Assembly: GCA_977016875.1 (NCBI GenBank)
Contig: CDRNST010000041.1
Span: 186,001-250,000 of the forward strand
Length of the DNA: 64,000 bases
Direction of reading: 5' to 3'
Source of the DNA: Pavona decussata
Lineage: Eukaryota
Made by a program: the position numbers and the translations under genes. Below the pieces are notes generated by a model. The model saw nothing but the letters and a program-made list of their open reading frames with translations, was not told the origin of the DNA and did no database searches. Shown here one piece after another: positions 37,401 to 42,525 of the stretch (position 1 is the first letter of the stretch; each line of letters opens with the position of its first letter).

Positions 37401-40400
37401 AAGAGAGAAACGTCCCTCGCCAAACGCGTGTTTTGGATTATTTTAACCGACCTTGTATCCTGGATCCCGATTGTGGTGATTGGTTTGAATTCGGTGTTAA
37501 ACGAAGCCTTTGAGCCACCTGACGATATCGCCGTGTGGATTGCTGTCTTTGTCCTACCGATTAACTCAGCAATGAATCCAGTGCTCTACACCTTTGCAAC
37601 CCCACAGGTATGTAGTAACCTTTTGTGGCCTTCATTAGACAATCTACAAAGAAAAAATTCAGATAATCCAAAAATAGACTCTTCATTTATCACACATTAA
37701 CTGCATCTAGCTAACATTGGGGGAACATTGACTCTCTTTAATAGCAAAATCTGCTGTAGTGTTGATTAACTAAACCTACTGTAGGTTTGTACAACTTCAG
37801 TAGGGCACGAGAAACCATACTTACTGCTGTTGTTTTTGCACACCCTTTACGCCCAGGAATAACAGATCCCGGCATCTTTTATATCCTCATTTATCGCAAA
37901 ATCCTCTCAATACCACAAAATTGACAAAAACGTACAGCCAAGCAATAAAAAAGAGCAATTTAAAAAAGTAATATTAGCGATAAGGTGATCAAATTCATTA
38001 AGAAAGACATAAATTAAAACACAGAAAATAATGTTTTGCTATGCTAGCATCAAATAAAATTTGAAGACGGGTCGCAGTGTAGGATAGTTGAAAGTTCTTG
38101 CAGGCCAATTCCGTTCCGTCCCTTAGTGTGACCATGATTGTTTGCTTTACCATATTGATAGCTTGTGTTAAATTGCATCAATCAAAATAATTACTTAAAA
38201 CTTTAAAAATTAACTAAATGGCTTATTTGTCAGGTGCGAGGGATCTTAAAACAGAAAATGCTAAAGCTCTGGTGCTATTTGCGTGGAATTCCTCTCTGTG
38301 GTCGGGGCGATGAAGGTAAGTACAACTTAACTCTGCTTATAAACTCAATCATGCAAAATAAAACTTTCATGTGAACTTGTCTATCGATATTACTGTGTAA
38401 ACGCCTCACAGGGAACCAGCTTTGGGTTTTTTTGCAGCAGTGCCTCAAAAAATAAAGCTGTTGAAGCTAAATTAAGTTTTTACTACCATTAATCATACTT
38501 TTATGTGTCTTGTAATGGAACAAGGAGGTGAAGAGGAACATGATGAATCGGAAGACGAGGACACTGACGACTATGAGAGCGACCAGGGTAAATTTATCTG
38601 CCATTACAATACAATTCGCTACTTTATTTTCGTTTATTTTATCCTTTTCAGTCCGAGTGTGTACTATGCGCTTTGCACTAATAGTGTGCCACCCTTTTAA
38701 ACACTAGTCTCCGTTCTTTTCCTGATTATAGATTTGTCTTCATTTTGTAAGATCCTTCTGTACTTATGCCTAATAAATTATTATAAATCTGTTGTAATTC
38801 TTTCTGGCTTTCCTTTAATTTGCCAGAAGACGAGCAAGACCATGAAATGCTGGAGATGCAAGTTCTCGGTCAAGCAGCTGCTGACCAAGGTGATTTGAGT
38901 CGTAATCTAGTGCTGTGTACTATTACAGAATACCGAGAGAATAACAATTAATAATGAAAATTTGAAGAAAGATATATTCGTGCAATAAATGGATCTTCAA
39001 AATGTAAAAGCTAGCTTGTAATCAGAAAAAGATATTCTTTGAGAATGATGTATTCTTCAGTGAATAGCGGAGGCATACTCGGAAAAAGGAAATTCGAGTG
39101 CTCCTTCCAGGAGTCAAACCTAACACCTTCCAATTACTAGTTCGGATGCTCAACCACTGAGATAAAGTGGACTCGTAGGAGCTAAGGCCATAAATTAGGT
39201 TCATGGGACAAACATTCTCCCTACTGCTAGGATCTGAATGTCAATGTGTAGCATAGGTTCAATTTTGTCACTCATGTTGATGGCTTATCTCAGGTTTTTT
39301 CTCTTTTGTCCATTTTTTCTCATAAGACAATAAATAGTTTTGCACCATATTCGTCCCTGAAACGTCAAATGAGTATTAGGATTATCTGAATATCCTTTTA
39401 AACTATTTAATATGACTTCTTCCCTCTTATTGCTTTCAGATTCAGAAGAAGGGGATGCATCATCGGACACAGGTACGCTTGTATTACGCCCTGAAGCTTC
39501 TCCTTAATGAATAAGTTAGTTCTCGACAGAGCTTCTCACAACTCCTCCATCTTAAGATAGGATGACCTTTTTTAATACCATAATCAATTTCAGCTCTTAG
39601 AGAACATATTATCAGTCAATGAAAATCAAAATCAATAGGAACATAAAGAAAAGCTTCTGTATTGATAAATACCCACTATAAAGCTGCCCATTAAATGACG
39701 CCATCCTCCTCAGGAGACCTGTATTACAAAAATGACTCTATTTAATCTTTACTAAGAAGTACAACAACCTTGACCATTATTATTTTTCTTATTAATGCAG
39801 ATTATGAACGGGAAGAGCCAGTGATCGTCGTCACACGAGGTAAAGCACTTCATTTATTCACAGCCCTTAAAGAGAAAACAGATGATAATTTAGAGGTCCT
39901 CAGTTGCAAATATTCTGTGCGGTTTTTGCTATACCGTCAATAACAAGATAATGCAAGCATCGCCATAGAACTTAACAAAGAATTCGCTGAAAGTCACAAC
40001 CGAACGGTATAAATCAAAATTATAATTGTTATAAGCTTACGGGCTGGCACAGAGTCATTGTATTAGAAAACATAACTATAGCTAAAGGAAACAGCTATTT
40101 GTTTCGCTTTCCCGGGCATTAATGTATAAAAGCACCTGGGAAAACGCCTCTAGGACTGTGCTTTGATATTCATTAGTTTGGAATATGATTAGATCGTAAA
40201 TTAAAAACCCAAATTAAAACGAAGCTACCTGGTTCCTTTATTGAGTTGTATTTTCCCACTCATTTCAACATTTTAATGTTTTACATTTGTTGTTTTGAAT
40301 ACTTTGAAACATATTACTTCATTTACGTGTGCTATTGTATTAACGCAGAACCTGGTACCGAGATGATAGACCAAGGAGGAAAAGATGACGAAGGCAAAGA

Positions 40401-42525: not shown

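Follow-up and report, generated by a model that had tools for sequence, protein, structure and literature searches.

A predicted disordered, acidic cytoplasmic tail on an amplified leucine-rich-repeat receptor family of the stony coral Pavona decussata

Introduction

Rhodopsin-like G-protein-coupled receptors (GPCRs) form the gene families that are most amplified in the genomes of corals, with unknown roles (PMC10236652), and the main survey of leucine-rich-repeat-containing GPCRs (LGRs) in early animals set the tails of these receptors aside as "poorly conserved" (PMC4079206). A locus of the stony coral Pavona decussata raises the question of what such a tail might do. In the 64,000-nucleotide stretch of DNA analysed here (GenBank assembly GCA_977016875.1, contig CDRNST010000041.1, positions 186,001 to 250,000 of the forward strand; hereafter the window, to whose first letter all positions refer), an LGR gene continues after its seventh transmembrane helix (TM7) into a polyanionic tail of 633 residues. 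By comparing this gene with its paralogues and with receptors of other corals, we find a tail of modular logic, in which the ends are conserved while the middle is protected in its reading frame and conserved in its charge, yet free in its sequence, a pattern suggestive of a flexible tether.

Spliced, RNA-like contigs join the acidic exons to the receptor

The receptor part is carried by the exon at 36605–37607 (+ strand, as are all features of the gene given below), which encodes the end of a Cys-rich hinge and a whole rhodopsin-type seven-transmembrane domain (7TM) and is followed by a donor GT at 37608. It matches Pfam 7tm_1 with an E-value of 2.3e-26 over profile positions 2–260 of 260, has ERV in place of DRY and NPVLY in TM7, and its third intracellular loop is extremely Arg/Lys-rich. 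The closest solved structure is that of RXFP1 (7tmw, E 7.7e-51, against 2.6e-24 for TSHR and ~1e-18 for LHCGR/FSHR); among named proteins, those nearest to it are called GRL101-like or relaxin receptor-like.

We mapped four public sequencing runs to positions 37000–42900, taking run X1, whose contigs come from another individual, as RNA on a guessed label. X1 depth lay on exons, with none in most intron bins of this interval, and X1 gave GT..AG joints at 37607>38234, 38587>38827, 38889>39446, 39472>39801, 39839>40349 and 41857>42413, together with a further joint, 38315>38519, from tail exon 1 to exon 2. Runs X16 and X17 cover the introns without any of the tail splice joints and are therefore DNA runs. 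Since a 1647-nt X1 contig holds the 7TM exon with tail exons 1–3, and a 630-nt contig holds tail exons 4 and 5 with the start of exon 6 (joints 39472>39801 and 39839>40349), overlapping contigs link the 7TM exon with each of the seven tail exons, and X1 behaves as complementary DNA. Over 564 bases, the X1 contig of exon 6 and the window disagree at 4, and most differences between X1 and the window are states common to all paralogues; the contig therefore derives from the same type of locus in a different genotype. A near-identical copy, L041 (contig C274), is an unlikely source of the RNA contigs, the exon-6 contig being estimated to differ from it at more bases than this.

A preliminary description of the window had placed seven exons after TM7, all of which were found where it put them, with AG/GT borders, but two of its acceptors had to be shifted by 6 nt, in frame. 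As first placed, the seven exons together comprise 1902 nt, encoding 633 residues and a stop at 42523–42525. Tail exon 1 (38234–38315, 82 nt, on an X1 contig) encodes a helix-8-like basic stretch with Cys and the start of an acidic cluster, which continues as an acidic Ser/Thr/Tyr cluster in exon 2 (38519–38587, 69 nt in the RNA form, from X1 joints), and exon 3 (38827–38889, 63 nt, X1 joint) holds a conserved short motif, EMxV(L/I). Exon 4 (39440–39472) has two acceptors in X1, and exon 5 (39801–39839, 39 nt) has both of its joints on the 630-nt contig. By far the largest is exon 6 (40349–41857, 1509 nt, 503 codons), a fast-evolving, E/A/D/G/K/V-rich spacer with heptad (21-nt) periodicity and predicted disorder; joined to it is exon 7 (42413–42525, 113 nt), in which a basic patch precedes the terminal TTVFDTRL, the DTRL codons lying at 42511–42522. 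The 3′ untranslated region spans 42526–42712, with RNA-like depth ending within 42516–42712; neither AATAAA nor ATTAAA was found.

The two corrections concern exons 2 and 4. Exon 2 begins at 38519 in the RNA form, rather than at 38525 (63 nt) as first modelled. At 38517 the window has G, giving an acceptor GG where all 16 paralogues described below have A (acceptor AG), and an in-frame alternative AG lies at 38524, 6 nt downstream of the lost acceptor, so that the window copy may use 38525 and a 63-nt exon 2. The major acceptor of exon 4 is 39446 (27 nt; 38889>39446, depth 10.3), not the 39440 of the first model, which is the minor one (33 nt; 38889>39440, depth 3.2). The phases of all eight exons are compatible, both in the window and in each of 11 further copies, those with a complete, unbroken model. 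Across 502 codons, the exon-6 frame contains no stop, against a mean of 30 and a minimum of 15 in 2000 shuffles, whereas the other five frames contain 8 to 83; codon-position bias in this exon is strong.

The preliminary description had left room for transcripts that stop at 37700 and for acidic exons that belong to a separate gene. It is indeed true that the open frame continues 31 codons beyond the 37607 donor, that depth in run X19 is higher on exon 6 than on the 7TM exon (though contig depth is unfit to rank gene parts), and that CNGB1 yields both channel-fused and soluble GARP forms (PMC12783967). Nevertheless, we consider a soluble product of the acidic exons, or a usual transcript that ends after 37607, very improbable: the two X1 contigs tie receptor and acidic exons together, the exon phases fit, and X1 depth drops from 18.3 on the exon to 1.3 in the first intron. 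Retention of this intron, which ends the protein at 37700, is minor, and an extra isoform of low abundance may accompany the form with the full tail. As the main form, both a separate gene and an end at 37700 were rejected on the spliced X1 contigs.

The tail is acidic, predicted to be disordered and cytoplasmic

The 633-residue tail contains 22.6% Glu, 10.0% Asp, 13.1% Ala, 9.6% Gly and 8.8% Lys, in agreement with the dominance of Glu, Asp and Ala noted in the preliminary description; D+E amounts to 32.5% and K+R to 10.7%, with a net charge of −138. The loose seven-residue periodicity noted there was likewise recovered, with residue-identity autocorrelation reaching z-scores of 5.3 at lag 7, 3.8 at lag 14, 2.3 at lag 21 and 2.1 at lag 28. 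Tandem Repeats Finder (TRF) reported three short 21-nt arrays in the tail, and the heptad periodicity is most simply explained by growth through slippage of 21-nt units. Acidic residues taken by themselves recur with a period of 3.5 residues, a signal that ranks near the 95th percentile of shuffled sequences.

AlphaFold2 modelling of exon 6, with nine paralogous sequences aligned, gave a mean predicted local distance difference test score (pLDDT) of 40.4 and a predicted template modelling score of 0.17, with 453 of 502 residues below a pLDDT of 50 and three weak helices as the sole structure, consistent with the disorder proposed earlier. Pfam returned no family and no EF-hand or other binding motif for exon 6, a feature search of the ESM Atlas gave no usable match, and a word-based protein search gave nothing at E 1e-5. 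This last blank, which leaves exon 6 with no detectable relative, is a weak negative, since full-length receptors fall outside the length filter of the search and low-complexity sequences fill its candidate list.

As the tail comes after TM7 in a receptor of class A, whose topology is fixed for the class, and is spliced to the 7TM, it is cytoplasmic, as had been predicted. This sets it apart, as also first described, from the secreted acidic skeletal-matrix proteins of corals, which share its high Asp/Glu content; the tail is, moreover, Glu-rich rather than Asp-rich. A secreted skeletal protein was rejected as an explanation on topology.

The free C-terminus, D-T-R-L followed by the stop (42511–42525), fits the class I PDZ ligand pattern X-(S/T)-X-hydrophobic. 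Its last four residues are identical to those of CFTR (-DTRL), a ligand of the PDZ domains of NHERF1 (PMC7866199), and the β2-adrenergic receptor (-DSLL), another NHERF1-binding protein, likewise ends in a class I motif. In contrast to both proteins, about 600 disordered residues are here predicted between the membrane and the putative ligand.

Paralogues conserve the ends, the frame and the charge of the tail

A copy search over the 602-Mb assembly found 16 further loci with the same eight-exon layout, giving at least 17 copies. Eight of these loci (group A) have a 7TM 96–100% identical to that of the window and eight (group B) one that is 93–94% identical; paralogue tails are ~590–680 residues long. 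The values of identity, divergence and the ratio of nonsynonymous to synonymous substitution rates (dN/dS) given here compare the window with these 16 copies.

The 7TM is under purifying selection (dN/dS 0.10–0.28), while exon 6 reaches 0.67–1.30. Relative to the older group A copies, DNA divergence is 1.5–2.4% in the 7TM, 6–8.6% in exon 6 and 4–15% in introns. Despite this rate, exon-6 indels are all multiples of 3, whereas intron indels are mostly of 1–2 nt; all 14 measurable exon-6 lengths are multiples of 3, ranging from 1335 to 1659 nt (445 to 553 codons), and in every copy the exon has D+E of 0.30–0.37 and K+R of 0.10–0.13. Against group B, identity falls from 0.93–0.94 in the 7TM to 0.81–0.85 in the proximal 93 residues and 0.47–0.54 in exon 6, and is 0.53–0.58 in the last exon. 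The proximal tail (exons 1–5 together) is 81–98% identical across copies, and the TTVFDTRL end is kept in 12 of the 15 other copies with a placeable last exon, the final eight residues being identical in every group B copy in which that exon was placed. Together, these comparisons show a spacer whose length and sequence drift in a nearly neutral way but which retains its reading frame and its acidic composition.

Several copies depart from this pattern, and five of them are decaying. L041 ends in DIRL, having lost the Thr at −2. In L043 the last exon contains a stop and the exon-3 acceptor reads AC, and exon 6 of L046 is interrupted by a TAA. L047 combines a 7TM exon split by ~950 nt with a frameshift in the last exon, and the 7TM exon of L048 carries a 1-nt indel. 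L044 contains an internal 48-codon duplication in exon 6, and three group B copies (L050, L052 and L054) have an uninterrupted run of ~20–30 Glu there, which is absent from the window's group. The copies show birth-and-death evolution of a tandem family, in keeping with the top rank reported for rhodopsin-like GPCRs among amplified coral gene families (PMC10236652).

Acidic tails occur in related receptors of other stony corals

We gathered relatives by an exhaustive 7TM-exon profile search and by a word search seeded with the Stylophora model P0003. Models from Stylophora, Pocillopora and Montipora were found, named GRL101-like, relaxin receptor-like or "glutamic acid-rich protein-like", and in a FastTree phylogeny of the 7TM these coral models and the window copies form one clade with a long stem and strong local (SH-like) support, Montipora being nearest to the window.

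Tails were counted in 50 proteins of this clade, leaving out P0165 with its 512-residue tail, and in a comparison set of 153 distant relatives. The preliminary description had called the tails of characterised LGRs far shorter and had suggested comparing tail lengths among orthologues. The first point stands, as ~65–82 residues remain after the aligned TM7 in solved glycoprotein-hormone receptor and LGR chains, and the median tail is 105 residues in the 153 distant relatives. A long tail is not unique to this gene, however: the clade has a median of 206 residues, and its acidic tails range from 180 to 512 residues (the longest being that of P0165), so that the window's tail is the longest seen, its own paralogues aside. 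Of the clade's 39 tails of at least 100 residues, 37 have D+E of at least 0.19, compared with 1 of 85 among distant relatives. A class I PDZ-type end is present in 20 of 50 clade proteins and in 34 of 153 distant relatives, and many clade ends take the form (V/I)(F/L)DT(R/H)L.

The acidic tails of the Stylophora pistillata, Pocillopora spp. and Montipora capricornis models (D+E 0.19–0.38) share with the window helix 8, EMxV(I/L) and the acidic Ser/Thr cluster, the EMxV(L/I) motif being found in both Pocillopora and Stylophora tails, while their spacers are built from different, E/Q/K/P-rich repeats. These automatic gene models also differ in their shorter tails and in their 7TM, which is 52–63% identical to that of the window, compared with 35–45% for GRL101-like proteins of arthropods and other animals. 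Judged from these sequences, the acidic tail is a trait of a coral receptor family and not a one-off. Equivalent gene models are already public; our literature search found no paper that describes these acidic coral receptor tails.

Other domains were seen in some relatives. The tails of S. pistillata P0003, P0006, P0160 and P0165 contain an OTU cysteine-protease domain (PF02338, E 3e-11 in P0003), reflecting either a real receptor–deubiquitinase fusion or a fusion of gene models. In a neighbouring clade of cnidarian LGRs, the tails are ~330–345 residues long and not acidic, and most of them terminate in a PDZ-type motif of class I (DTYL, DTSV, DTPV, and ETRV in Nematostella P0213); seven models of this clade, P0201, P0203, P0205, P0208, P0211, P0214 and P0215 (from Acropora and Oculina), carry a kinase-like piece (PF07714).

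A tethered PDZ ligand and its alternatives

Among the roles proposed for the tail, that of a spacer or scaffold fits the evolutionary pattern best. We think it probable, though far from secure, that the tail is a polyanionic, disordered tether by which a class I PDZ ligand is connected to the conserved motifs near the membrane. The tail comprises three modules: a conserved membrane-proximal part, made of the helix-8-like stretch, the acidic Ser/Thr/Tyr cluster and the EMxV(L/I) motif; a polyanionic spacer of ~500 residues, predicted to be disordered; and a conserved C-terminus ending in DTRL as the putative PDZ ligand. Long, flexible and self-repelling, the spacer could present the ligand to a submembrane scaffold while keeping the proximal regulatory motifs accessible, acting by its charge and length and not by its exact sequence, and through these motifs the tail may set the localisation, clustering or trafficking of the receptor. 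A comparable case is the GARP region of CNGB1, which is likewise long, Glu-rich, cytoplasmic and fused to a membrane signalling protein, and which has been discussed as a structural linker (PMC12783967, PMC5424795). GARP, however, is N-terminal on an ion channel, whereas the tail described here is C-terminal on a GPCR, and no sequence relation between the two was found.

Several points weigh against the tether. The role assigned to it derives from a sequence pattern; the RNA support consists of chained assembled contigs from another individual, under a guessed label, and not of one molecule; and not every copy is constrained, as the lost motif of L041 and the broken L043, L046, L047 and L048 demonstrate. 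A dN/dS near 1 is equally expected of a spacer that is merely tolerated, and the acidic composition could partly persist through the mutational inertia of a purine-rich repeat. A search for an NHERF-type C-terminal domain detected none in the genome, but the same search was blank in control genomes and is hence uninformative.

In one alternative, exon 6 is a tolerated, slippage-prone expansion of a 21-nt repeat that contributes nothing by its charge or length. The proximal motifs and the PDZ ligand at the C-terminus would then be the sole targets of selection, which by itself would force the frame to stay open. Substitution in exon 6 at the intron rate, with the dN/dS values given above, agrees with this account, as do the TRF arrays, the variation between 445 and 553 codons and the duplication in L044. 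We nonetheless regard it as unlikely, if deserving of serious consideration, because D+E is held at 0.30–0.37 in copies only ~50% identical in exon 6, because tails of other coral genera are also acidic though derived from different repeats, and because pure tolerance predicts shortening deletions, yet no copy has a short spacer. The tail, or its proximal acidic phosphorylatable cluster, might instead fold onto the basic third intracellular loop and the cytoplasmic face, competing with G protein or arrestin and so tuning basal activity. The Arg/Lys-rich loop would offer a partner, and no part of the tail is better conserved than its proximal acidic Ser/Thr/Tyr cluster, but a short acidic stretch would suffice for such autoinhibition, leaving ~500 more residues and the PDZ-type end unexplained. 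We find this quite unlikely as the principal role, although autoinhibition and tethering could coexist.

Very unlikely, in our view, is a cation buffer or sensor, in which ~200 carboxylates per receptor would bind Ca2+ or other cations with low affinity on the inner side of the membrane, in the manner of calsequestrin-like proteins, and the cations may bring about the formation of helices. The acidic content of the tail is compatible with this, and the 3.5-residue acidic period and the three weak AlphaFold2 helices could be read in the same way, whereas a low-copy receptor would make a poor bulk buffer, no EF-hand or other binding motif was found by Pfam, and the rapid drift of the spacer argues against specific sites. 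Beyond the simple tether, we can also imagine that the polyanionic tail is a working part of the receptor, perhaps an electrostatic or Ca2+-responsive ruler governing how receptors are spaced, clustered or condensed on a PDZ scaffold, in a lineage-specific LGR subfamily that stony corals evolved and amplified, and that it may diversify from copy to copy under selection rather than by drift. To this speculation we attach little probability; if true, it would represent an undescribed mode of GPCR regulation by bulk charge.

Whichever role applies, the 17 paralogues form a natural series in which different spacers are mounted on nearly identical receptors, and thus a ready system for studying the effect of a very long acidic disordered tail on a GPCR. 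For annotators there is also a warning, in that coral models named "glutamic acid-rich protein-like" are receptor tails.

The ectodomain and other features of the locus

Upstream of the 7TM exon, the ectodomain extends over 19129–35506 (+) and includes at least ten leucine-rich-repeat (LRR) exons of 72 nt each, all in one phase, bordered by AG and GT and matching the pattern NxLxxLxxxxFxxLxxL. These lie at 19129–19200, 24972–25043, 26698–26769, 27370–27441, 28101–28172, 29043–29114, 31570–31641, 32035–32106, 33690–33761 and 35435–35506, the last being phase-compatible with the 7TM exon. Searching with the N-termini of coral LGRs by tblastn gave weak matches, on these same exons. Upstream of 37000, the first X1 contig record continues for 831 nt, of which all but 436 nt are accounted for by the remainder of the 7TM exon; these 436 nt are consistent with spliced LRR exons.

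A rhodopsin-type 7TM and an LRR ectodomain of 72-nt exons are shared with RXFP1, RXFP2 and invertebrate GRL101, the type C LGRs, from which the gene differs by its 633-residue polyanionic tail. No signature of the N-terminal LDL-receptor class A (LDLa) module of type C LGRs was seen in the window. The signature was sought by regular expressions in six frames of the window, where the 5′ end of the gene is not delimited and an intron-split LDLa could escape; the gene models of close coral relatives also have none. By its predicted domains, the gene is an LGR with an LRR ectodomain and a type-C-like, RXFP1-like 7TM.

Five further LRR-like exon candidates (+) were seen at 6324–6395, 7172–7243, 21756–21827, 22912–22980 and 25607–25678, and may mean either that the receptor has more than ten LRRs or that remains of a second ectodomain are present. 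The interval 12664–13542 is reverse-transcriptase-like, matching residues 54–341 of Stylophora P0155 at 33% identity (E 3e-37); the matched part of P0155, a protein that carries Pfam RVT_1 (PF00078), lies upstream of its 7TM. In the window this interval is a retroelement located upstream of the first clean LRR exon, possibly within an intron.

Within the intron between tail exons 3 and 4, positions 38970–39363 hold a very high-copy repeat with many partial joints, its summed contig depth in X16 being ~107,000 against ~1,000 in neighbouring bins. ARAGORN found no tRNA in this repeat and Rfam no RNA family in 36000–44000; in appearance, the repeat resembles a short interspersed element. Just downstream of the gene, 43209–43760 holds a stretch of N and, after it, a long microsatellite of GTT type.

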